Shown: positions 2,748-45,030 of the stretch, piece by piece
Layout: the number at the start of each line of letters is the position of its first letter
Numbering within the stretch: the first letter of the stretch is position 1
Source of the DNA: Magallana gigas
Lineage: Eukaryota
Direction: 5' to 3'
NCBI RefSeq assembly: GCF_963853765.1
Contig: NC_088853.1
Location: 28,892,001-28,956,000 of the forward strand
Length of the DNA stretch: 64,000 nt
The notes under the pieces: generated by a model
Database searches by the model: none
What the model was told of the DNA's origin: nothing
The model's input: the letters and a program-made list of their open reading frames with translations, nothing else
Translations under genes and position numbers: made by a program

Positions 2748-5534
2748 TTTTATTTGGAGTAAAAAGAATTTACTATCCAGCACTACCTGTTTCAAATTGT
2801 TTTATGTCTTTAACATTGCTCATTTTAAATCTATAAGCAGCAAGTATGTGCAATCAAATTAAAAGTCTTTTATTGAATAATTGCCAAAAATTCTTCCAAA
2901 ATTTAAGAGAAAACATACTAGCCTAGATGTATAGTGCAGCAGTTAATTCGTGTTATACTGTTTATCCAGACCATAAATTTGATGAGTAAATGAGCTAAGG
3001 GTTGCAAAAATATCAAATATTCTATAGAACAATTTAATAAATTTTTTAAAAAAGTATTTTCTGACGATAAACCATTATAAACAATACTAGTATTTAAATG
3101 ACTCCTTTGTTGAGCCATCTCAAACTGGGAAACTTTTTTCAGTGCTACGCATTTGCTAGAGAAAAGGGATGAAGCATGATATCTTTTGCAGGATAATGAC
3201 TTAAAATTTTGGTAAACCCCCAGAATCCCCGGCCATTTCATGCGTACACTTCATTTCCATTTTGGCTATGCACCTGAATATCACAAACTTTTTAATAAAA
3301 TTGGCCTGCTTTCTTAAGATTCTGCTTGGTATATGTGCAGTTAATTCTATTCATACTTGTAAACTTCAGATCATAATAGCCCTTTTAAATACAAGATACC
3401 AGTCAAAGAAAGTTATTAACAAAACATAAAACAAAAACATAAAACATACATGTAACTGTACATATTCCGGTATATGCAAATGTAAAATTTGATTGATAAG
3501 TCATAACAGTTTCTCAATGGAAACAAAACCATATGCAGATCTAAATAGGAGCAACACAATTTAACTTTAATTCATATGTTTGTCATAAAATATCAATACT
3601 GCGTAAGGCAGAGAATGGTTGTAAAATTCACTATAAGTTATGAAGCCAATTCAGAGATAGATTGCCAAATGGTTAAATGCTACCATCATTTATAATCCTT
3701 AACAAACATTTAATCTCTTCTTACTACTAAATTTAAACTAAATCAAATTCAATGTAAAATCTGAAAATAACATTTGTTAACAAAAAACAAAAAACAAAAA
3801 TATGTAAACTGAACTCAAAACCAACTTTATGCAAATATTTGGCACCTTGACTTCGTCTACATATTCAGAAGTACTTATATCCTTGTTAGCATTTTCAATA
3901 ACTTTGCTAAAGCCAAGAGATCTTCTAGCAGTTTTGGTTTCTTGATCAGATGACCCTATAGTTGATACTATCCAACAAACACACATTATAAGTTATCCAA
4001 TAATGTGACTCTAAAGAACTTCCTTTTATATACACCTTGGGAATGTGCAGAATTGAGATATAAATTCATCTGAAAGTTTTATGTTTGTACAAGTACCTAA
4101 TACATACCAGCATTCAAGCTTTTGTCAGCTAACATCCCTGTGCAATGTGGGTCTTGAATCTAAAAAAATGAAAGAACATTGCTTGCATTTGTATCTAATA
4201 AACTTAAAGGCTTAATATATCTACCTTTTAGGATTAACTTAACTGCTATAAATAACTTATCCATCACTCATTTAGAGACATAAATTTCTTCTTTATTAAA
4301 GCATATTATATCTATTACTTGCAAAGCATTTTACCTGTACAATGCCCGGAAGTTCCCTCAGAGAGATGTATGGCGACTCTGAAAAGTTATTTTATATTTT
4401 TTTTAAAGTCATTCTACCATTTTTGAAACTTACGAGTATATCTTATCCAACGAAAGTGCATTTTTGTCTTTTAAAATTGTTTATGGAAGCTCACTACAAG
4501 ACTTTCACATCTCAATTCTTAAAATGGCAATGAAATGATCCGTTCAGAATCATCATGAAAATAATCTTTCAATGAAGATGACACTAATGCCAAATCAATT
4601 AAAAATGTAAATTTTTTTTACTCAATTACATTAATTTACATTTTACCTTTCCTGATCTGGAAAACAAAATAAAGAAATAAATTGCATTGTTATACCTTCA
4701 GGCTTTGGCAACAAGGGTATGTGTTGACATGTAGATAGATTGTGAATCTCATGGGTCGGTACAATCCCTTCACAAATATGAACTGACTTGGCTTCTGGTA
4801 CAGTTGCCTGTCAAAGTACATTGAATAATGTAAGAATTTGGTAAATGCACATTTCTCATGTTTATTTAAAGTATAAAATGCTTACAACTTCCTTAACCAG
4901 AAAATTCAATGCTTTACAAAACTTTTATTTAATGAATATATCTTAAATGGAACAAAATATGGAATTTACCAAGAGTATGATCAATCGCGTTTTCGTGAAT
5001 GACAGATTTTTTTTAACGAGTGATTGTTACCTGCGGGGATCTGAGTAGCCTTTTCTTCCTAGACCCAGGTGTCTTAGACATATTCCGTTTCATATTCTCT
5101 TCGAACTGAGATATTATAGCTAAAATCTCCTTCCGGTACTTAATTACTTTCTCAACTTTTGAGAAGCATTTCGTGCACACACCGTCAGTATTGTCGGGTA
5201 TTGTTGTCACTTGACTGATTGCAGCACGCTTCTCTTCGCTTAAACGGAGTTTTAATTTCGAAAACTTCTTAACAGTGGATTTGCCGTTCTCGTCAATTTC
5301 TTTTACTATAAAGGAAAATCCACATAGGCAGCATATGTTTGTGGAGCTGTATACCTTTCGCGGTGTCATGGACGCCGCCATCTTTGTTTATACGCAGCCG
5401 ACTGTCACACCGAACATTTCATAGGCGATACGCTGATTGGTTGGAGCAAAAGGTCACCAGAACGTGACCTGAACGGGGTTGCGTTAGATCCTTTCACGAG
5501 CGGTATCCATATATAACAGAGAGCGAGATGAAAG

Positions 5535-5554
5535 GTCTAATTTTAATTAGATTG
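5535..5554 (-). mobile_element. Candidate terminus of the Academ-like element (CAATCTAATTAAAATTAGAC hairpin)
   Basis: Short hairpin TCTAATT-AA-AATTAGA beginning with YR, about 150 bp upstream of the transposase ATG. It coincides with an abrupt change in sequence character. Confidence 0.4.
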
Positions 5555-5619
5555 AATACTTTGTAGATGTAAATATAAAACTATAACAGACTGCGCATCT
5601 ATTTATGTAGAGTAAAGTT

Positions 5620-6015
5620 TTGTGGGACTGTGTGATTTAATAGATTCTAGACTTGTGGGACTATAGTCTGGTTTTGTGGGACTTTTTGTTTACTGGTAAA
5701 TAGAATTTAGACTTGTGGGACTATGGTCAGGTTTTGTGTGACTATGTGATATAAAATCTAGACTTGCGGGACTTTGGTCAAGTCTTGTGGGACTTTGGTC
5801 AGGTTTTGTGGGACTATGTGATGTAATCTGGACTTGTCAGGTTTTGTGGGACTTTGTGATGTAGTCTGGACTTGTCAGGTTTTGTGGGACTTTGTGTTTA
5901 AATAGAATCTAGTTTTGTGGGACTATGGTCAGGTTTTATGGGACTACATGATGAAATCTAGACTTGTTAGGTTTTGTGGGACTATGGGATTTAATAGAGT
6001 CTAAACTTGTGGAAC
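5620..6015 (+). repeat. Dense cluster of TTGTGGGACT-containing degenerate repeats
   Basis: More than 12 same-strand copies of TTGTGGGACT(A/T) or close variants, spaced ~20-40 bp. Further scattered copies run to ~10240. Confidence 0.85.
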
Positions 6016-6043
6016 CAAGTGTATATACTCATGTGACTTCAAG

Positions 6044-6163
6044 ATGGAGGAAATTCCCATTGGATTTATTTTGTTTTATTCTCCTTATGACTACTCACAG
6101 GCATGCACCTTCTGCTCAGATTTTTTGTTTTGGAAATCTTTATACATGGATTTTGTTGTTTAA
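6044..6163 (+). CDS. Micro-ORF cassette 1 (39 aa MEEIPIGFILFYSPYDYSQACTFCSDF...), possibly truncated by an indel
   Basis: CATGTGAC at 6030, AAGATGG start, TAA at 6161, GTAAGT donor at 6260. Confidence 0.3.
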   Translation: MEEIPIGFILFYSPYDYSQACTFCSDFLFWKSLYMDFVV

Positions 6164-6702
6164 CTTTTTTTTCATTGCCTGAATTCCATGCGTGTCAGGC
6201 TTTTTGCAATATCTCAAATTTTCATGTTGAGAGGTTTACTCTTCTTTGAAGGACTTTAAGTAAGTAAAACCTTTGTTGTCTGTCCATGTTATTGTTTCTA
6301 CATAGATACATACCAGAGAAATAGTTAATGCATTTAAAAGATTGTAGAAGCAACTGTAGATTACTGTTGCTGAAAGTCCAAGCTAGCTTACTTTTTTCAA
6401 CATATCTTCATTTCATAGATATTTTAATTTGATATATGGGTAGATTAATTATTTGAAAGTTACTTTATACTTGTGGGGCTATGCCCAAGATTTTGATGAA
6501 AATGAAAATGTCTCGGTGAACTTGCAGGACTATGATCAATGTTTTGTGGGACTATTAGTCTTATAGTAGTAGATGCATCTCTTAACTGACTTATGGAACT
6601 TTGACCATTGGTTTTTAAACAATGAAATGTTAAATTCCAAAATTGAAGTGATGAACATCTAACAGGAAATTAACATTATAGAAATAACTGTAGGAATATA
6701 AG

Positions 6703-6894
6703 ATGAAGAAGAGGGAGATATTTTGTTGGGGTGTTCATGTAATTTTGAGTCTGCTGCTGAAAGGGCTGGCTTATTTTTTTAATACCTTTTCAGTTTATGG
6801 ACATATCAGTTTAAATCATCTTTTTACGATTTCTTTCATATTTGATTTAATATTTTGTTTTGTTGCTGCTGTGTATTTTTATTGTTGGCCATAG
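6703..6894 (+). CDS. Micro-ORF cassette 2 (63 aa, hydrophobic, possible membrane peptide)
   Basis: ORF track. Preceded by ACAGGAAAT and a ctgtag acceptor; GTAAGT donor at 6904. Confidence 0.3.
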   Translation: MKKREIFCWGVHVILSLLLKGLAYFFNTFSVYGHISLNHLFTISFIFDLIFCFVAAVYFYCWP

Positions 6895-8830
6895 AGAGTT
6901 ATGGTAAGTGAATATTTTAAGTACAATATCATAGGAAATGGTTTGTATCACTCTTCTTAAACAAACTTTGCATTGTTTGAAGTAGCTATAGGGATCGTAG
7001 AACTAACAACTCGATCAAATTAAATCAACTATCCTTTTTTGTCGTAAAGCCATGATTAAATCTTTTTATTACACAAAAAACAAAATTATATTTACAGTTG
7101 AATGATAAAATATGTTGTTTATCTTATTAAGGAATCAAAATTTACAAATGAATTTGACTGCAAAACATTAATTCTTTCAAATATTTTCTAAAGATACATT
7201 GACAAATTCGATTCTTAAGGGTACTCTGTACTTGTGAAACTATGGCTTAGTTTTGAGATATTACTAAAGGATTAACTGGACGTATATCTATATATATCTA
7301 TAGCTTATCTTAAGGATGACAGACCCAATTCACTTCTACAGTTATTAATGATTTTCATGAAAATTCTATATGAGTTAGAGTTACTAAATATATATTAAAA
7401 TCAATAAAAAATAACATAAAAATTGAATTAGATTTGTAGTAGGGATTATTTCAAAAAATGTTTGTATTACATCAGGTTCTCTTTCAATTGAACCTAATGG
7501 GGAAAAGGATTCTTGTGAGGGAAAAATTAATTTTTAAAAAATTCTGCAATTAATTATCTATCCAAATCAAAGTATGACACTTATATGATGATTTTGAATT
7601 AATACCATTTTAAAAAGGACCATGTCATTCACCTCGTTTTTACGGGGGCACATGCCGAAGTTTGGTGTGTCATCATTTTTCTTCAATTTTTTATGAGAAG
7701 TACTGCGCAAACATTAAGGAAAAGTTTATGTACATTATTTTGAGGTTGATTTATATAAAAAAAAAACCAAATATCAGAGTGTGCTAAACGTTTGTGTATG
7801 ATAAAATACTTCAGAACTTAAGCACAGGGGCAGTTTTCCTATATTTTCAATACGAGTATTGAAGCGAATAGAAATGTATATGATTAATGTTCCCTGGCTC
7901 AAACTCTGTTAAAAAAAAGCTTTGTAGGTGTTTATAATTAACTTGAGCTAATATAAAACTCCCTACAGTTTTTGACATCCCCTAAACAAATAATGTTGAA
8001 AAGTGTATTTTAGCATATTGCTTAATCATAGCAAGGTCAGCCACAACTTGCACTATATAAAGTGTGTATTGATGAAGTTGAACAGCTATATCTTGCATCA
8101 TAAGCGATTTTCCATTGAGTTTTAGTGATTGTGACGTAATATTGAGAATTCAATGTTCATAACAATCAATCTTTTAAGGTGCGCGATATTGTGCAAATGG
8201 AATATTAAATTGGGTCCGTCGTCCATAAATATATATGTATTCCTGAGGTTATGTATCCAAAAAAAAATTATGGCCTCTCAACTTGAGGGACTTTGCTAAG
8301 TTTTGCAGGAGAGTTGCCTCTACTTGGTCAAGTCTTGTGAAACTACAGAAAGATAAGAATCTATTTAAACTTGTTAGGATATGGCCTAAGTCTTGTGGGA
8401 CTACAGAGAGGTGACTACAGAGAGGTGTTTATGTTATGTTTAGTGGGAAATCCTACTTTGTAATTAATCACAAGATTAATTAATTCTAGAGACTCTTACC
8501 ACTGTGCCACATGGGCAACCACTTTAAACAATAATATGACTGCTATGTGACTATATTGATGTCCAACAATATATTGATAACTGTTATGCAATTTTAATTC
8601 AATGTTAGGGAATTAAAAGAAAAGGATTACGGGTAATTTGAAAAGTTGGGAGCAAAAAACAACTGGTAAAAAATAGAAATTTCAAGCAAAAAATTTTCGG
8701 AAACATTCATGTCCATTTGGGACTTTTTGGTCATGTGACTTACATGTAACAGTACTTTTGGACTCTGAACATAGCAAATTCCAGAGCAGTGGTTTTTTTT
8801 AACACAGTTTGTTGTAGGGATTTTACTAAT

Positions 8831-9067
8831 ATGGAAAATGGAATGAAATTGCAAGTTAAGCTTAGAAGTGATCATGATTACATACTTGTGTTATCATATG
8901 TACTTTATAATAACTGCAATTGTGTGCTTACTGTGAAAGATGAGCCTGATCAGCAAACTTTTAAAATGGTGTGGAGTTGTGTCTTGGAATTTGAATCTTA
9001 TTTTGAATTCATGGATGTAACTCATTATTGTAATCTGATGGGAATATCCTTTTTAATGTGCAATTAA
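8831..9067 (+). CDS. Micro-ORF cassette 3 (78 aa MENGMKLQVKLRSDHDY...CNLMGISFLMCN)
   Basis: CATGTGAC near 8732, ttgtag acceptor, open frame, AAG|GTATGT donor at 9079. Confidence 0.4.
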   Translation: MENGMKLQVKLRSDHDYILVLSYVLYNNCNCVLTVKDEPDQQTFKMVWSCVLEFESYFEFMDVTHYCNLMGISFLMCN

Positions 9068-9286
9068 GTGATTTCAAGGTATGTGTCTATAAACAGAATA
9101 GACATGTATTTTATTTGCTTAATTAATTCTATAAGATTTAGTATAAGCAAAAATTTTTGTGATATAGGGCCTATGTGTACTTTGTTCTTCTGGGACTTTT
9201 GCTTCTGTATCTTGGACATAACAAAGGTTAAGATAGGAAGTTATAGTAGACATGTGACAGGAAATGGATTTGTGATAGAATCTAAA

Positions 9287-9412
9287 ATGGCTGATTTGCT
9301 AGCAGCTCTCCTTGGTGTTATGACTGTCTCTGCTGTTTTTTTGCTATTTATATCCATTGCTCTCTTTTATTGTTGTATTCGGTGGACAAGGATGGCAACT
9401 CCAGGGAATTAA
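9287..9412 (+). CDS. Micro-ORF cassette 4 (41-aa single-TM peptide MADLLAALLGVMTVSAVFLLFISIALFYCCIRWTRMATPGN)
   Basis: CATGTGACAGGAAAT at 9251, AAAATGGC start, TAA, AAG|GTATGC donor at 9433. Paralog at 10026. Confidence 0.45.
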   Translation: MADLLAALLGVMTVSAVFLLFISIALFYCCIRWTRMATPGN

Positions 9413-10025
9413 GCAATCTTGATTTCATCAAGGTATGCCAATGGTTAAAATTACAGCTCTTGACAACCTTAAACTATAGTGTTAAATTACCATGGGACTT
9501 TGTGAATATTTTTTAATCAACCATTTTCAAAAATGAATGGATGGCAGATATTTCATAGATATAGCATTTTTTCTTAACCAATTTAAATAAAAAAAACACC
9601 CAGTTTCTTAATGTATATGACTTATATAATTCCTGTATAGTATTATGGGACTTTGGCTATCTTTTGTGAAACTTAATTTAGAAATATACAAATCCTTTCT
9701 AGGCTTATGGGACTATAAGCATGTTAAGTAAGACTTTAAATTGGATATATTTAAGTCATATCTAAACTTGTGGGACTATTTACAAGTTTTATCTGATTAG
9801 TTGTATTTTTAACAGCTAGCATTGGACATGTACATAAATTGTATTTTTATTGGAATTGGCCATAAAGTTATTCCAGTGGGATCTATTCTTTGTAAAGGAT
9901 TATAATATATAACCATTTTAAGAGTTTTATCAAGACTATTTGACAATTTTTAAAGGTTATAATAAGAAGGGAAAGAAGACATGTGACAGGAAGTGAATTT
10001 GTGATAGGAAATTTAAGAATCCAAA

Positions 10026-10158
10026 ATGGCTGAGGAGGATTTGCTAGCAGCCCTCCTTGGTATTATGACTGTCTCTACTGTTTTTTTACATTTTTATTTT
10101 CACTGTCCTTTTCTATATTTGTGTTTGGTGGACAAGACTGCCATCTCTAGGGATTTAA
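10026..10158 (+). pseudogene. Micro-ORF cassette 5, frameshifted paralog of cassette 4 (MAEEDLLAALLGIMTVSTVF...)
   Basis: Clear nucleotide similarity to 9250-9480, including the CATGTGACAGGAAG motif (9980) and the donor (10179). There is an indel in the T-rich segment. Confidence 0.55.
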
Positions 10159-10949
10159 GCAATTTTGAATTTATCAAGGTATGCCAACGGCTCTTATAGA
10201 TAACCTTACAATGTTAAATTTCCATGTACTTGTGGGACTTCAAAATCTTTGTAAATTAGTCTTTAAAAAAAAAAATGGATGACAGAAGTTTCAAAAAGAT
10301 AACATATTTTTATGACCAATTTAAAATTTTGCAAAATGCGATATATTTCAAATTTATGTGATTTTGTTTGAGAGTAGTTTGATTTTACAATTAAGATCAG
10401 TTCAAATTTAGGATTTTCCATTTTTTTTTGGTTAGCTTTACTATTTTGTTTCAATTTCTTGTTGAAATATGATTGTATAGCAATTGTTTAATGTGAGTGA
10501 CAGTTGATTTGCAGTTTTTATACACATCTGATGTCATACTAAAATTTCATAGAATTAATCCAAGATGGTAATGAATCATTCCTGCCTCAGGCTACCTGGT
10601 TCTTACAAATAGCTGTAAATAGCTGATGTCATATTCTGCCAGTAAGTGCAAATAAATCAAATAAATAGGTTAAAAATATATTTTGTAACATTAATCTTCT
10701 TAAAATAACATAACAATTTATTGTATCTGAAACAATTTTAAAGAAGGTAAATTATCATTTATGGGGGCCAAATGTGACTCGTACCATATATAGTTCTTTA
10801 TGGCTAAATACAAGATTTTTGGGTATCTTAGTAAATGTACTTGTTTATCTTCCAAAAAAGTGTTATACTATTTTTCTGTAGAAAAGTTTTGAATCAGATG
10901 ATACAAAAATTAATTTAATAGATAACTTATTTTGTCATCTTTATTGCAG

Positions 10950-15049: not shown

Positions 15050-15880
15050 ACATCTTATTTAATTTATAAAATTGGGATATATTTTATTAACTGGAAAAAA
15101 GAGATGTTTGAAAACAAATTTAACATTAGTCATGTATGTACAATGCAATATAATAGCATTATAAGTGCCATTGCAAAGTTTTTAAGACTTTTTAGTTTCA
15201 CCAAAGAAATGTATTGTTATACTATTGGTCCAGTTATACCATTGTATTATGAGCCATTGTTCTTTTATAATAAGTGTACCAATATTATCTATAAAAATAT
15301 TAACAAAACTCCAGCTTCTGTTGTCAGATGGAACTCTGAAATGTCACTTAATGGTTATTTAGAAAAAAACACCAAAGATGTATTCAAAATATGTTTTAAT
15401 GTGACCAAAGATTCTGCTGCTCAATGGTTCCAGTATAGGATTTTACACAGAATTCTCCCAGTTAAAAATTATCTGAGGAAGATAAAAGCTACTGATAACG
15501 ATGATTGCACATTCTGTGGGAATTCTACTGAAACTATTGAGCATATTTCTGTTAGTTGTTCCCATTCATTAGCTATGTGGAATCAGTTTAGTATTCACAT
15601 TTATAATACTACTTCAGAAAGAGTTGATTTCAATATATCAAATGTCATTTTTGGAAATTGTCCTCTTCTAGATACAAATATGGTTGTGAATTTCCTTATT
15701 TTATATGGAAAACTATTCATGTTTTATTGTTCTAAACAAAACAAACTTCCATGTTTATCTGGTTTATTATGTTTCTTAAAAGTGAAATATGAAATTGAAA
15801 AATGTATATCTTATAAAAATTCTGAAATGAAAATATTTGACAAAAGATGGACTTTGTGGAGAAATATTTTTCAAGAGTAG
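15050..15880 (+). mobile_element. 5'-truncated L1/Tx1-clade LINE, ORF2 C-terminus (zf-RVT)
   Basis: QWFQYRILHRILP..CTFCGNSTETIEHISVSC..MWNQF..VNFLILYGK..YEIEKCI..FDKRW within ORF 14978-15880. Confidence 0.85.
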
Positions 15881-16164
15881 ACTCGTATACTTTTTTTTCA
15901 ATTTATATCAGTACGGTTTAAACCGTGGGAGAGTGACTCGTCACAACATGGCCTATCCCGCTCCGAATCGCTTCAAGATTTGTTTCATTGGACATTGATA
16001 TATTTCTCGTTAGGGACGATACTTGACGTCGCATCCTGACTTAATGAACTTTCGTTGATATCGTGAGCAGTACGATGTGATTATCCGGGACCGTGGTGTA
16101 TTAAGATTTGCAAGTTTGACAAATTCTAGGTATTTATTGACTTTTCGGGTGACACTATATAAAT

Positions 16165-30049: not shown

Positions 30050-31230
30050 TCACAGTCTGTCCCGTCTTGTTGAGTGAATGAAGCTTGTCGGTGCCTAGTA
30101 CAATTTTGTTTGGAATGTTTCCCTTGGCAGTGCTGACAGATGTAAGGGTGGGGAATGAGGCTTGTCGGTGCCTAGTACAATTTCTCCCTTGGCAGTGCTG
30201 ACAGATGTAAGGGTGGGGAATGAGGCTTGTCGGTGCCTAGTACAATTTCGTTTGGAATGTTTCCCTTGGCAGTGCTGAAAGATGTGAGGGTGGGGACATG
30301 CTCGCCCTTTGGGGCAGGTGCCATGATTATTGAATGAATAGCAGTACATGTGCGTCTGGAGGGGGGGGGGGGGGGTGGCACGAAAGGGCTGTTTCTTATT
30401 TTTCAATTTGTAGTCAAGCCCAAAAAAAACTGCTTCTTGGCAAAGTTCGACATTCTTTAGTTGCCATGGACAAGAACCAGGGTCATTTTCTCCCAATTTC
30501 CTAAATTTATCGTCATAGATTAGTGCTGCTGCGTCCCCACAAGCATCTGAAACGCGCTATACAATTTGTGCGTAATCCATTAAGTAACTAATTTCCTGCG
30601 GATGTTTCTCGGCATAAATTGCCACAAATATGTGGAATGCCTCCATCCGTTTTGCAATAGTCTTAACACTCTCCTTTTCATTTTATTTAAGAAAGAGTAG
30701 CTGACCATCCTTTTCAACGGATTTGTATTTATCATTCTCAGTAGTCAAGTTTGATTGCAGAAGGGAGGAGAGTTTTATGTAATCCCCAACATGTATCTAA
30801 GCCCTTAAACATCAATGCCCAAAGTGAGAGATACTGAGCCAAATGGGGGAGTAATATTTTTAGCAGATGATTGGATAGTAGTACCTGGTAGGTGGTGGAC
30901 AGTTAACATCTATAGATTCTGTAGATCGGTTGGCAGTTTTCCTTTGTTGCGTATGAAAGTTTTCCATGTATTGACGGAATGTATTTTCGGTGTTGGGAAG
31001 AATGTGTGCCATGCATGATTGGATCATGCTTTCAGTGTTTATATTTTGTGGCATGGCAGGTGTTGTACTTCTGCTTGCTGTTGTAGGAGGGTTGGGAAGT
31101 TGTACCCGAGAGGTCTTCCTACGCTTAGGTCTTGACGCCATCCTATTGAGAGAAACGCAGCAATATGAACAATAATCAGTAATAATGTAAATGTTAGTGG
31201 GATTTACCTGTGTTATCATGCAAATCCTGA
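30050..31230 (-). pseudogene. DIRS/Ngaro ORF1 (gag-like) with CCCH/CCHC-like finger, degraded
   Basis: MASRPKRRK..MAHILPN.ENTF; EAFHIFVAIYAEKHPQEI; LIYDDKFRK; CPWQ; YCYSFNNHGTCPKGRACPHPH..QHCQGKH. Confidence 0.7.
30083..30295 (+). repeat. Triplicated 65-77-bp unit at the gag C-terminus
   Basis: GCTTGTCGGTGCCTAGTACAATTT at 30083, 30160 and 30225. Confidence 0.95.
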
Positions 31231-35040: not shown

Positions 35041-36073
35041 TTTTGAAATGGTATTACGAGATTAAAATATTTGTGCCTCTAAATTATGTAATCTGCTATT
35101 AGGGTTGAAAATGTATTGCTTTTGAAAGTTTCTAATATAAATTTTTTTAAAGATATTTCTGAAGTTTGCACTTTGACTGCGTCTAGAATTGAAATTTACA
35201 AATATGTCCCCTTCATTTTCATACCTTTAAACCACTGAGAATTTCTTTTAATACAAACTCAAGAGAATCGATAAAACAATATCCAGTACGAAATTTTCAT
35301 TAAACATGCAGTTTTATTATATTTCTACTGTTAGCAAAGTTTAGCATTATCTCTCAAGTTCCTAAAATTTTTTGTTAGTTCTCTTATTGTTTTTGTTTTT
35401 ACTATTCATCAACCACTTCTTTTAATTTTTTTCTTTTTCTGTCATTTCTTAGACTATATTTTGCGCGAAATGTTTAGATGTCTCTATTTTTTTCTTCACA
35501 AAGAAGTTTTCTACTCTTTATTTCTTTACGTTGTTCCTTTATTTTGTTGCTTAAAGACATCAAAGCAAAATTAAATGCTTGTGACGTAGAGGTTGCCACA
35601 ATTGGCGCTGTAACATCTCATGCAGTTACTGTCCCTACATAAATTTCAAATATAGCAGCTTCAAAATCATTTTTTCCCTTTTTTTCTTTGAATTTCAACT
35701 TGTGCGTCCTAATTTCCTTTTTAGAGCATCCGAATAAATACTTTCATTTTCTCCTATTTAATCTTGTGGTCTATTTTGCAAAGTGGGACAATGTCATTTT
35801 TCCAAACAAGTTTAAGGCTTCTTTACAGGTTAGTTACTATTTTATTTGGGAGGGGGTGTAATTAGCAGATATCGCCAGAACTGTCAGTTCTATTCATTTC
35901 AAAAATGCTACATCGTATATCAAGGAGTCCTAGAATTTTCTTTTCACGCTTGAAAAAACATTCTTTAGCAATATTTTCAACCAGAAAACATACTGACGCA
36001 CGCGTCAAATGGGCCGCAAAAAAATATAATTAGTGTATAATAATTATGCCATCGTCCATGATTCTATCATAAC

Positions 36074-36283
36074 CTATACTAATTTTTTTAACCAGAGTCT
36101 ACGCTGCTTTGTTTTTCGCAAATTTGAAACAGGCTGTATAGGTAAAACATCACCAGGCTGACCAGCATTTTGGGAGCTACAACCTGCCTCCTCATGCATC
36201 ATCGCCTTCATCTGTGTGGCTGATCCAGCTGCTGCGGGAGGTCTAGTCCTTGTTTTTCTCCTACCTTCCCCACTGGAATTCAT
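36074..36283 (-). CDS. Short basic/Pro-rich ORF resembling a DIRS ORF1 N-terminus
   Basis: MNSSGEGRRKTRTRPPAAAGS... directly after a ttccag acceptor. Similarity is compositional only. Confidence 0.25.
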   Translation of the reverse strand: MNSSGEGRRKTRTRPPAAAGSATQMKAMMHEEAGCSSQNAGQPGDVLPIQPVSNLRKTKQRRLWLKKLV

Positions 36284-36392
36284 CTGGAAATATTTTATAA
36301 ATGCGATTTAAACTTTGCTTTAAAAAAAAGGGGGATATCTTTCAACAGAAACCACGAAGAAGCATGTGAAAAAGCGGGTATTTGCATATAAT

Positions 36393-36835
36393 ATAACCCC
36401 AACCATATAGGCCGACAAAGGGGTATAGTATAAACACCTTTACCAAATGGGTCAGTTAAGAAATATTTGCACATATATGGCAAAAATGTAATTAACTCCG
36501 ACCATATAGGGGTATATATTAAAAGCCCAACGGGACATAAATAAACTGCGTATGTGTGTATTAATAGGACAATAACCCCGACTTTATAGGGGTTCAAAAA
36601 TATTCACACAATGGGTTGTTCCTTCAGCATACACATATACATATGATGCAATTAACCCCGACCATATAGGGGTATGGATGGAAAAATCCATTGAAAAATT
36701 TGCGAATAGGAATACGCAATTAAATTAAAGAATCCCCCACCATTTAGGGGTATGTTAAATGGAATCTTACATTCAACATGGAATATTAATGCAATTAAAA
36801 AAACCTTCAGTGCTAACCTCAACCATATAGAGGTG
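36393..36835. repeat. Regularly interspaced hairpin-repeat array (6 repeats, ~80-nt period, dissimilar spacers)
   Basis: Consensus AATTAACCCCGACCATATAGGGGTAT at ~36393 (with a 10-nt insert), 36490, 36571, 36650, ~36732 and ~36814. Confidence 0.85.
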
Positions 36836-36970
36836 ATACACCAACAAGTATCCATAATAAATTAAACTACTAATAAAGTTTTTAAAACAAGAGAATAGTT
36901 TGCATTAATATATGCATTGATAATTAGCACCTGCTTTATAAGGATAAGCATCTAATCATAGCAATTAACT

Positions 36971-37340
36971 TTACCCACCACTGTGCAGATATTTGAGGGT
37001 TGAAACAACCACAGCTCTGGTGTTATTAAAATACTTTCTGTGCCCTTGTTCGTTAAGGTGAACTCCATCATCAAGGTAGACATTAGACCGATTTGGGGGA
37101 TTCAGGAATCCTGAAAGACGAAAGACAGCTACACCCTCCACTTCTTTAATGTACTCTGAATTTCTTCTGTTAAGTTCATCAACCCTGCTGTTGAACCATG
37201 GTAGATCAACTTGGTATCGTGTGGTCTTTAACGGAGCAATTATGTGAAAAGTTTTTAAAATTACCACCGATTTTACAGATTCTCCATAGCGTAAATCGAG
37301 CACAAATTCAACTAGATGCTGTCATTAGACAGTAAAACCC
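36971..37340 (-). pseudogene. SGNH/GDSL hydrolase C-terminal half
   Basis: FNSRVDELN..VYLDDGVHLNEQGHRKYF (block V DGVHLN). Confidence 0.75.
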
Positions 37341-37379
37341 GCACCAAGTGTTTGCCCATAAATACATGTAAGACTGTTT

Positions 37380-37497
37380 AGTAAGAAATTCCAATGTTAG
37401 AAAGATATTGACTGGACATGATTGTACTGACAGATGGATGAATGGACAAAGTGATTCCTATATACCCCCTCAAATCCTGTTTGCAGAGGTATAATTA
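37380..37497 (+). mobile_element. HINE/pearl-like (Helentron-associated) 3' end
   Basis: Degenerate GACA-like microsatellite followed by the TATACCCCCTC...GAGGTATA stem-loop. Confidence 0.6.
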
Positions 37498-37744
37498 AAT
37501 CTAAAAAGCTGATTAAATTACCGATAATCATACAAAAATGACATTCACATGCAGTGCTCAATATGTAACATACTTGTATGTCTATTTCCTTCAGAATTCT
37601 AAAAAACTTGTCATCGGTTTCAAAGAATCTTTCACTAAAATCAAAACCAATTATTCTAATTATTATTTTGATATTAACAATGTGTTGCAGTATACTAATT
37701 TATGAAGAACAATATTTACTCTTTGACCTGATAGGGCATAGGGA

Positions 37745-40015
37745 CATGACATCCACATTTGAAAGGTTCGGCTGAAACGTCAATGCAGTGCTTGTGATAT
37801 TTTTGGCCACACGTAGAACATGTTATTTTGTCACCAAAATCTCCCTGACATAATCCATATATTTTGGCTCCACATTTCTCAAAAAAACTTCTGCCCTCTT
37901 CTAACAAGGAAACTATACACCAAAGGCAAAAATGCTTGTGTGTTCTTTCATTTTCATTTCAAGAAGCCAAACATTAGGAACAATGGATTTATTGTTCTCA
38001 TTTGGATGGACATGCTCTTTCTCCCCACTGTTTAAATACATAGTAATTGTTCGCTTTGCTAGTGTAGCTATAGCTTTCAAGTGCAGTTCACCTACAACAT
38101 TAAGCACGATAGAACATATCAGTATTGTTATTATACTTTAAAAAATCATGTACTTTAATATTTTGTTTTGAAAACGATCATATAATTTATAAAGTTGCTG
38201 CATAGTATGGGCATATTTATTTTAAATCAAGGATATCATAAGTTTCAATGTAGAAACATTCAAACAATCATACGTGCATCAGGAGAGCTTTTCGTTGACT
38301 TAGGGTCCATTTCAAGTCGAATTAAGTCTTCTCTACGCTGTAATATAAAGAATTTATATGCATACCTAAGTGAATAAACCCTTGCAATATTACTTTAATT
38401 TACAAATAAATAAAGACTCCTTGCTGATTTCAAATTAGTTATCTGTTTCCGCCAAGATTTGTTTTTATCTCAAAGTAACCAATTAAGCTATGTATCATTG
38501 CAATGTTGTGATGTTTTGATTTGTTTAATTAGTTTTACAAAAAAGTTATTGGATCCAAATACTTACTTGACAGTGATTTCATGGCATACTACTGCCAGTC
38601 TTAAAAACTGCACTTTTTTCACATCTCCCCATATTAGAATGCTAATGGATGCAAACAAACTTTCGCTAGGAGAAAACCCTGTTGTCAAGGGACATAACTT
38701 ATCTTTCTGTATGGAAGATGGTAGATGATCAATGTAGCTAAAAAAAAACAGTGAAAACAATTGATCTGGTAAATTGTATCATCTAAAGGAAGCTAAAGGC
38801 AATTAACATGTGTGGAGGATTTTTCCTCACATTTTTAAAAGTTGCAACCATCCATATTAAAAAGATCAACTAAATGTTCTAGGGATTTTATGAGTGAGGT
38901 AATACTGGTAATTAAGCACAATTAACTTAAAAGATAAAACACATTACTATTTATGAACTAAAAATAATGTTTGATTTATGAAATTCAAAATAATAATAAT
39001 AACATATTACCCATCACCAAAGTCACCGACAATGTTGAAGCCATAAAATCGAGTCTGTACATTATCAGGAAGTGGTGGAATGTTGGATTCTATTTTTCCT
39101 ACAGTTTCTGGAATTCTGTACCAGCCACAATGTCTCCTGGCATCCAACAATCCCTCACAGTCTCTCTCAGAAAATCTCTGTAAAAAGTGTAGTGATATAA
39201 TATGAAAATCTCATTTAAGTAAATTATAACATAATATAATTAGTACACGTACCTTGATACATTAAAAGACGCTTTGCTATTCTTACTCTGCTTACTCTCA
39301 ATTCTTCAGGAGAAATGTTCAAAAGGTTTTCCTTTTGAAAAGTGCCTTACACAAAACTAAAACAAATAATAACAATTTTAGATAAATACCAACAGCAATT
39401 TAAGGGACTTGTTACAACAAAATGCCAATTATAATTTCATTTTTTCAAAGGAATGCTTACAAGGAGAAAAAAACGCCACAGTTATGGCTATCCAGCTGTT
39501 TGCTGTGATCTACTGTATGCAGGGTCCAATTCCCATTCTGGATACTTGACGTGCTTGATTCTAAACCAGTTGCAAATCTTTGATTGAAGAAATAACTAAA
39601 ACATACCTGACAGAGTTAATTATCCAGAAAGGGCATGTTTAACATGGAATCAATTATCTACAGGGTTTATATACATTCTGATTATACTAAGTTGCATTAG
39701 TTTTTATCCCCCAATATGATTAACTAGTTTTTATCCCCCAAAATGATAAACAAGTATATAATGTATGTTTGTTCATATATAATGTACCTTCAGTTCTCAT
39801 GAATCATCGTCTTTTGTAAAAGGGTTTCACCAAGTGGATTGAAAAAATTTATTTGTCTTGCCTTGGGTTTAACTAACTGGAGGTAAATAAAAGAAAACAT
39901 GCCACAAACATAAATAATGTCATAATACTGAACTAAAAAAAATTACCTTGTCTTTATTATATGTTAAGTCTTTATAGCTGAAATTGTTAAACTATCAAAA
40001 ATAGTAAAACAAAAA

Positions 40016-44665: not shown

Positions 44666-45030
44666 TCAATTATCATTAGATTCTATAAACCTTGGATTAC
44701 TCCTAGGAAAAATTCCAACAACAGACGCTGAAAATGGACCTAAATTTTTTATATAATAAATGGTTTCCATTAAATGAAATAAAATTAATGAGGGATTAGT
44801 ATTTCTTTTAATGTCATTACCCCCAATTTGAACAAGAACATAATCGGGGGTAAATACATTAATATAATAGGGAGCGATTTCCCGCATATCCGTAATTGTT
44901 CCTCCTGGCTTTCCAACACTGAAAATTTCCCAGTGACTAGTAAAAAAACTTGCAAGAACTGATCTGTCTATCCGTGACACAAAACTATGTCCTATAATTA
45001 ATACTCTTGGGCTAAGAGGACCTACAAATT
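44666..45030 (-). pseudogene. SGNH/GDSL hydrolase N-terminal part
   Basis: PRVLIIGHSFVSR (block I), VGKPGG (block II), VLVQIGGNDI (block III). Confidence 0.8.

Follow-up and report, generated by a model that had tools for sequence, protein, structure and literature searches.

The stretch of the Magallana gigas genome analyzed here (64,000 nucleotides (nt) of contig NC_088853.1, positions 28,892,001 to 28,956,000; in the following "the window", with positions counted from its first letter) carries an array of six short hairpin repeats that is wholly enclosed by a genuine spliceosomal intron of 695 nt, encoded by the minus strand. The intron belongs to an internal fragment of a retrotransposon of the Ngaro type. 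Comparison with relatives of this element largely establishes that the array is the relic of a conserved cis-element, made up of 3–11 stem-loops with a variable 5–6-bp stem and a near-invariant 9-nt loop, UAUAURGUY, and located in an intron between a 5' SGNH-esterase open reading frame (ORF) and gag. We propose, with a probability of roughly 45%, that these hairpins may constitute a multivalent cis-acting RNA signal that is carried by unspliced genomic RNA alone and would select this RNA for export and/or for packaging and reverse transcription. The window copy is a dead fragment, and the results do not bear on local function.

A repeat search of the window retrieved the array as a 21–26-nt motif in six copies between 36394 and 36834, with a period of about 80 nt. 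The plus-strand core is TAACCCCGACCATATAGGGGT, repeated at start-to-start steps of 99, 80, 80, 78 and 83 nt; in the sense orientation of the element the motif reads ACCCC-TATATGGTY-GGGGT. The first step is longer because a partial self-duplication (…ATAGGCCGACAAAGGGGT) interrupts copy 1. A search tolerating up to three mismatches gave four matches in the window, all of them within the array, versus 0.00 expected from 100 shuffles, and a covariance model run over the 64 kb hit precisely the six array copies, each time on the minus strand. Self-comparison of the window disclosed no further copy of the array region. A first-pass annotation of the window had reported six ~26-nt repeats at a period of ~80 nt, separated by spacers far more divergent than the repeats, and both statements hold: mean column identity in an alignment of the six units is 56%, with conservation confined to the core, and Tandem Repeats Finder called no array here, owing to the high divergence of the units away from the cores. 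The same annotation had interpreted two stem changes as preserving the pairing, which proved correct for one of them. The ACCTC/GAGGT stem of copy 6 is a true two-sided change that is also present in a 93%-identical copy from a separate data set (L001) and is therefore inherited, whereas the change in copy 2, thought to be G-U compatible, is private to the window's dead copy and creates a C·A mismatch on the sense strand of the element.

Relatives of the fragment were found by a word search with the hydrolase piece, which yielded five on short public contigs, and then by a search with the gag piece, which yielded longer loci; the Logan contigs among them (L001–L010, L012 and L019) may stem from RNA or DNA runs. 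In L004, five of the six cores are identical, even though its esterase is only 63% identical to that of the window and its spacers have diverged beyond detection by Tandem Repeats Finder. Across families, conservation is higher in the core columns than in the remaining intron, for instance 84% versus 62% between L004 and L016 (p = 1.7e-6). The motif has been kept in Crassostrea, in Saccostrea and in a more distant relative, in 3–11 copies at a spacing of 30–130 nt, namely 30–77 nt in Crassostrea virginica, 75–130 nt in Saccostrea echinata and 36–46 nt in Saccostrea cucullata, the latter with nine exact copies. The distant relative, L020, whose gag is 45% identical, shares the layout of esterase, intron and gag. 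Eleven hairpins with the loop TATATAGTT lie in its intron, and this same loop is enclosed by two different stems, TTCCCA/TGGGAA and GATCTC/GAGATC, versus ACCCC/GGGGT elsewhere.

For an alignment of 50 hairpin instances that includes L020 (A3), the covariation score amounted to 0.264 versus 0.121±0.017 for shuffles, none of 500 reaching the observed value, and slid controls scored lower. Pairs were maintained through two-sided changes at five of the six stem positions; 30 cells were changed on both sides versus 8.1 expected, corresponding to only some 4–5 independent events rather than 30, because the copies in L020 are recent duplicates. Conservation of the hairpin is highest in its loop (T, A, T, A, T, R, G, T, Y), which, as far as sequence conservation is a guide, points to recognition of the loop by a protein. 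Hits of the covariance model across 143 kb were confined to these introns and always fell on the element's strand. The initial proposal that each repeat folds into a short hairpin with conserved pairing is thus corroborated by covarying stems and an invariant loop across families. Folding of the entire intron gave z-scores of -3.7 (sense) and -5.2 (antisense), values that do not separate the strands. A motif scan of viral contigs retrieved nothing and that of metagenome contigs three lone hits, presumably due to chance. At E ≤ 1, Rfam returned no family for the array (window positions 36000–37400) or for a full related element (L018 positions 5100–10300), models of hammerhead, hepatitis delta virus and other ribozymes included, and a full-text literature search for three motif strings found no paper.

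The boundaries of the intron were derived from RNA. On the minus strand it extends from the donor …CACA(A/G)TG^GTGGGTAAAG to the acceptor …TATTTCCAG^ATGAATTCC (here and below, ^ marks the exon-intron border), with the GT at 36978–36977 and the AG at 36285–36284. Reads and contigs of four runs were mapped to 35900–37500, and in two of the runs, X15 and X17, which belong to separate studies, RNA contigs connect 36284 with 36982 across two intervening letters, so that 695 nt net are removed. In RNA contigs the depth at the exon junction is 125 and 157 (~125–300 for the spliced form) versus 25–30 over the array; the array is hence transcribed, with spliced and unspliced forms coexisting. The exon junction is absent from the contigs of DNA run X1 (one run only). 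Contig L010 shares the junction (…CACAATG ATGAATTCC…), and its esterase ORF overlaps gag by 26 nt. The NCBI gene model P0012 of C. virginica likewise splices the intron, such that one ATG ends exon 1 and another opens exon 2 and the predicted protein begins with 'MM'; the same ATG^GT … AG^ATG arrangement recurs in L012, L016 and L020. An alternative GC donor ~65 nt upstream of the main donor is used with the same acceptor (GC-AG type); the corresponding joint in L002 yields an ATGA stop/start overlap of esterase and gag, and the equivalent site in L004 reads CAAG^GCAACA. The segment between the esterase (or the element's 5' end) and gag is kept in four other public genome assemblies (L011, L016, L018 and the scallop locus L017). 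By contrast, the plus-strand splicing device with mini-introns and microexons that had been considered for the array is not supported, since its splice signals were read on the opposite strand and joints of mini-introns were not observed.

The carrier suspected in the first-pass annotation, a DIRS/Ngaro-like element, was confirmed by the full relatives, which contain a reverse transcriptase, a tyrosine recombinase and split direct repeats and display the order SGNH esterase, intron, gag, reverse transcriptase, tyrosine recombinase. In L001 and L004–L009 the esterase is followed by the same array in the same order, while in L002 and L003 it is joined directly to the downstream ORF, which encodes a gag-like protein with a CCCH knuckle. 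L010 comprises the end of the esterase, gag (351 aa), a reverse transcriptase (RVT_1, E 4.8e-10) and a tyrosine recombinase (Phage_int_SAM_1, E 2.4e-5), as identified with Pfam, and L012 has a full 206-aa esterase and, after 0.78 kb, gag, reverse transcriptase and recombinase. ORFs for the two enzymes are present in the full relatives L010, L012 and L011, and neither lies within the window fragment. The chromosomal C. virginica copy, L011, has split direct repeats in the layout A1 … B1 A2 B2, a signature of Ngaro elements (PMC9210276, PMC7192593). A methyltransferase domain gave no Pfam hit in the full relatives. An ATGA overlap between the reverse transcriptase and recombinase ORFs of L010 was looked for and not confirmed, the called start of the recombinase ORF being TTG.

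The oyster elements share with described Ngaro elements gag, reverse transcriptase/RNase H and tyrosine recombinase as well as the A1…B1-A2-B2 repeats (PMC9210276, PMC7192593). An extra SGNH ORF and the apparent lack of a methyltransferase domain are a further, partial resemblance. The oyster elements differ in the position of the hydrolase, which is found 5' of gag in the oyster loci examined but after the recombinase in amphibian Ngaro elements (Xenopus; PMC9210276), and in the conserved spliceosomal intron between hydrolase and gag. Neither the hairpin array of the intron nor that on the 3' side of the recombinase ORF (see below) is mentioned for Ngaro in the papers that were searched.

Some relatives show further peculiarities at their 5' ends. 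Upstream of the esterase ATG, the leader contains CAAT^GTAAGT or CAAT^GTGAGT (L001 30–40; L004 131–141), a string that strongly resembles a 5' splice site and could serve as donor for an RNA that skips the esterase; no such junction was seen. In the S. cucullata locus L018 (5100–6000), a hairpin array of 9–11 copies at ~40 nt directly follows the 5' end of the element, the esterase ORF being absent. Most of its units contain a further palindrome that is akin to GCAGGATCCTGC and, in one unit, matches it exactly, and a donor-like ATATATG^GTAACC precedes the array. The Pecten maximus locus L017 (1444–2770) has the esterase-intron-gag layout, and its intron harbors 3–4 copies of another unit of ~180 nt that carries GGTCAGTTRTATGGTCGAG together with a GTAAC-NNN-GTTAC palindrome.

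Within the window, positions 36132–37314 are, on largely conclusive evidence, a dead internal fragment of ~1.2 kb of this oyster Ngaro-type element on the minus strand. Homology to the relatives at the DNA level spans 37314 to 36132 only, with none past either end, and identity to the esterase-array-gag contigs across the whole array is 93% for L001 and 78% for L004. What is left of the esterase is an ORF for its C-terminal half (37303–36971, with a TAA stop at 36973–36971), truncated 5' at ~37314 and 86% identical to residues 91–186 of the intact L001 esterase; a PDB sequence search and a protein atlas added nothing on this protein further than GDSL/SGNH. The ATG at 36283 opens a 69-codon ORF, the beginning of which aligns in tblastn with the N-terminal gag sequence of L002 and L003 at 84–86% identity. 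The gag sequence breaks off at 36132, where homology to full copies stops, and a paralogous RNA contig runs on with gag sequence past this point. The neighbors originally named for the array, an SGNH hydrolase and a gag-like ORF, are therefore real, but both are truncated remnants on the minus strand. The features are compiled in Table 1.

Table 1. Positions of the array, its intron and the surrounding element in the window, and of repeats and 3' arrays in related loci (numbering of each locus).
Feature	Position	Strand	Basis or remark
Six-hairpin array	36393..36835	-	core search and covariance-model hits
Cores of the six copies (plus-strand positions)	36394-36414, 36493-36513, 36573-36593, 36653-36673, 36731-36751, 36814-36834
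Second spacer island (plus-strand coordinates)	36441-36452, 36527-36538, 36609-36620		matching places in L004, L012, L016
GT-AG spliceosomal intron, 695 nt, enclosing the whole array	36284..36978	-	RNA junctions
Alternative GC donor, …AACAAGG^GCACAG	37042..37043	-	contigs L002/L003 join here; runs may be RNA or DNA
SGNH/GDSL esterase ORF, 3' part	36971..37314	-	Pfam Lipase_GDSL_2, E 2.9e-6
Gag-like ORF start, first 51 codons, exon 2	36132..36283	-	tblastn
L011 repeat A	9029-9192 and 15426-15589		164 nt, 99%
L011 repeat B	15070-15369 and 15735-16034		300 nt, 100%
3' array, L010	3884-4464
3' array, L011	14525-14788
3' array, L012	5201-5726
3' array, L017	6469-7127
3' array, L018	9600-10144
3' array, L020	7130-7276

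All families, scallop among them, possess a second hairpin array, which is located on the 3' side of the recombinase ORF and consists of 3–8 dispersed copies of GACTGTCTGAGGCAGC with a nearly invariant core and the loop ACUGUCUGAGGCAG. Many different sequences take part in the pairing of the flanks here: 93.8% of the cells are paired versus 70.5% in shuffles (21–56% in slid controls), and the covariation score is 0.628 versus 0.206, with 0 of 500 shuffles reaching it. Counting wobble pairs gave 23 G·U cells and 0 A·C cells on the sense strand, and the 3' hairpin is therefore one of sense-strand RNA. It is absent from the window and has no match in Rfam. The 3' array shows that these elements use arrays of fixed-loop RNA hairpins.

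The stretches between the intronic cores are colinear among copies (L001 and L004, at the 93% and 78% given above), and introns from four families, which represent two genera, can be aligned over their full length. They contain a second conserved island, ACCCAYTGGGT-like in the sense orientation and itself palindromic, which alternates with the main hairpin, with a higher-order period of ~160 nt. One contig of a DNA run skips 83 nt (36802–36886), exactly one unit, a case of genomic copies that differ in the number of units. Units that follow one another head to tail, share their descent and vary in number (3–11 among families) largely establish that the array arose by tandem duplication of a ~80-nt unit, the hairpins having since been kept while the rest of the unit drifted. 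As regards the origin of the array, the caveat of the first-pass annotation that it might be an old minisatellite was well founded. That the array has been nothing but a neutral minisatellite, its cores conserved by chance or gene conversion, we regard as very improbable and already disfavored: descent from one unit of ~80 nt (or 160 nt), the one-unit deletion just mentioned and the decayed motifs in family L012 would suit this idea, but cores have remained identical inside arrays whose spacers diverged beyond recognition by Tandem Repeats Finder, and the motif has been kept across genera at different spacing, with covarying stems.

The array had also been described as similar to a clustered regularly interspaced short palindromic repeat (CRISPR) array. 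What the two have in common are near-identical short direct repeats with hairpin potential at a regular period (six cores in the window, five of six identical in L004) and longer, more diverged stretches between them. The spacers, in contrast, are diverged copies of one unit in conserved order; they are colinear and homologous between copies and genera, and therefore there is no spacer turnover. Acquisition is likewise absent. The host is an animal, a cas gene is missing, the neighbors are retroelement remnants rather than parts of a prokaryotic or viral genome, and the array sequence is present in oyster DNA runs. Consequently, the CRISPR likeness does not hold up. A CRISPR-like or guide-RNA array that is processed to units of ~80 nt is hardly credible: in its favor there is no more than a look of alternating repeats and spacers and the fact that the array is transcribed, against it the homologous, colinear spacers, the lack of a cas gene and of an Rfam family, and the absence of processing ends. 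Read starts and ends do not pile up over the array and give no sign of processing, so that the processed small-RNA array contemplated earlier is not supported either.

How, then, might an intronic array of hairpins serve the element? Splicing would remove the array and place the end of the esterase ORF beside the gag AUG. The spliced RNA would be the gag-pol messenger, in which the two ORFs overlap by 26 nt or, with the alternative GC donor, by AUGA, and gag-pol may be translated by coupling to the esterase stop. The unspliced RNA would be unable to couple gag-pol in this way, with 0.7 kb of AUG-rich sequence intervening. Since all five copies in assembled genomes keep the intervening segment, the unspliced RNA would have to be the template for reverse transcription, as the sole form able to pass the intron on. 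The hairpins could then be binding sites for the element's zinc-knuckle Gag or for a host export factor, and the bound protein would single out the RNA that still has the intron, to be exported and/or packaged and reverse-transcribed. A closely related alternative is that the hairpins damp splicing; packaging, export and damping are not separable here. More tentatively, we extend the proposal to both arrays: the intronic and the 3' array would be genome-selection signals of Ngaro elements, that is, multivalent platforms read via their invariant loops by Gag, reverse transcriptase or a host export factor, with the intron as a messenger/genome switch. They would then be the first cis-acting RNA signals for any tyrosine-recombinase retrotransposon.

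Several observations weigh against this proposal. Function is here deduced from position and conservation alone. Within oysters, no covariation was detected (90.3% of cells paired, equal to shuffles) because the stems are invariant there, so that the covariation signal for the intronic hairpin comes from the single distant locus L020. With 6 G·U versus 4 A·C cells, its strand is not settled by such counts, and folding energies of single hairpins equal those of shuffled sequence. In the scallop locus L017 the hairpin model finds no match, the intron sharing just the TATATGGTCG string within its different ~180-nt repeat. The S. cucullata family L018 lacks the upstream esterase, and splicing is only putative there. 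Finally, raw poly(A) reads of run X21 cover the array 3–11x, above the flanking exons, and this coverage comes solely from pairs with the first mate on the minus strand; if the library is of the usual dUTP type, the array RNA in this run is antisense to the element.

Apart from the damping variant mentioned above, an intronic splicing regulator may be envisaged in which the hairpins bind a repressor or act as non-productive decoys for 5' splice sites, so that some of the transcripts escape splicing; Rous sarcoma virus has a negative regulator of splicing with this effect. This would be in accord with the location of the array between a weak donor and the acceptor, with the coexistence of spliced and unspliced forms in RNA contigs and with the resemblance, in all families, of loop plus 3' arm (TATATG^GTCGGGG) to the real donor (…ATG^GTGGGT). 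Yet GUCGGG and GUUGGG match the 5' splice-site consensus poorly, part of the site is hidden in the stem, none of the joints observed starts within the array, and the resemblance to the donor may merely reflect common descent of donor region and repeat unit. Overall, we consider a splicing regulator unlikely.

Distinctly unlikely is a cluster of binding sites at the DNA level, for a transcription factor or insulator, acting as an enhancer or internal promoter in the leader. The gypsy element with its 12 Su(Hw) sites and mouse L1 with its monomers provide parallels: in the region from the 5' end to gag, a short conserved core recurs at AT-rich intervals of variable length, and families differ in the number of copies. 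In the oyster elements, too, the core is kept while copy number and spacing vary freely; the loop is as conserved as the stem, and the core includes a TATA-like string. The sites in gypsy and L1, however, act as double-stranded DNA, whereas the oyster stems covary and the array is intronic. In particular, the two different stems of L020 around the same loop are each still complementary, which fits a folded strand and not a protein reading double-stranded arms. Moreover, the sister array at the 3' end is clearly a sense-strand RNA structure, and read starts do not pile up downstream of the intronic array. Two specific sites were also considered and set aside: the A/T run is one base short of a CArG box for SRF, and of the YY1 site only the CCAT core fits.

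Quite improbable, in our estimation, is a role of the hairpins in single-stranded cDNA, be it as start sites for second-strand synthesis or as folded sites read by the tyrosine recombinase. A precedent exists in DIRS-1, which amplifies via linear single-stranded cDNA (PMC7192593), and Watson–Crick covariation would suit DNA as well, the strand being undecided by the G·U and A·C counts. On the other hand, the motif lies ~1 kb from the 5' end of the element, and neither the A nor the B terminal repeats contain it. Recombination is expected at these split direct repeats, which makes recombinase binding sites, among the early suggestions for the array, unlikely. Nor does the comparison with integron attC sites carry far: attC is a long imperfect palindrome at cassette or element boundaries, while the stems here measure 5–6 bp and fall far short of attC stems. 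Also rejected was a tRNA primer-binding site (TGGTCGGGG…), for which the tRNA would have to possess an unusual acceptor end, C1-G72, and of which six copies would be unexpected.

Returning to a signal confined to the unspliced genomic RNA, the closest analogies are the packaging signal Psi, the constitutive transport element (CTE) and the Rev response element (RRE) of retroviruses, which reside in intron-containing genomic RNA (PMC5035971, PMC4829213). Psi sits downstream of the major retroviral splice donor, and CTE and RRE lie within the retained intron; by analogy, repeated or multivalent stem-loops would be placed in the spliced-out part and be carried by unspliced RNA alone. Sequence and fold are unrelated, and 3–11 copies of a simple hairpin here contrast with a single complex domain there. 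Also, the spliced RNA serves env in retroviruses, whereas here it would serve gag-pol. A division of transcripts by splicing into translated and replicated pools has been described for Ogre and BARE (PMC3735527). These elements likewise have functional introns and separate RNA pools, but they are plant elements with long terminal repeats, and no intronic hairpin array has been described for them.

Further features were noted around the fragment and elsewhere in the window. The stretches 37304–37364 and 35954–36061 flank the Ngaro fragment and reach contig depths in the thousands in all DNA and RNA runs, loose ends being present at 37310, 37364 and ~35980. Both have the appearance of short repeats of very high copy number that resemble short interspersed or miniature inverted-repeat transposable elements, and one of them adjoins the 5' truncation at 37314. 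Just past this truncation, a 63-codon ORF (37716–37907, minus strand) has a weak match to the PHD finger (E 0.003) and is absent from the fetched Ngaro relatives. It prompted us to consider ORF1 of a CR1/L2-type long interspersed element (PHD plus esterase), which was rejected: the relatives have the order esterase-gag-reverse transcriptase-recombinase, and homology stops at 37314. Two distant relics on the minus strand represent other families of tyrosine-recombinase retrotransposons, a gag-like one with a CCCH knuckle at 30266–30694 (28–36% identical) and one of the N-terminal half of an esterase at 44765–45016 (27–29% identical).

The copying of tyrosine-recombinase retrotransposons is poorly understood, and we found no cis-acting RNA signal described for them. 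Three unusual features have been kept across oyster genera, namely the intron between a 5' esterase ORF and gag, the array of invariant-loop hairpins inside it and the second array after the recombinase ORF; the layout has in part been kept in scallop as well. These features offer short and concrete RNA targets for tests of binding, export and splicing. For genome annotation, "CRISPR-like" arrays of this kind in bivalves are to be recorded as relics of Ngaro introns. For the retroelements themselves, our findings suggest how an intron can be retained despite its removal from the messenger: the signal that selects the genomic RNA would be confined to the unspliced form.
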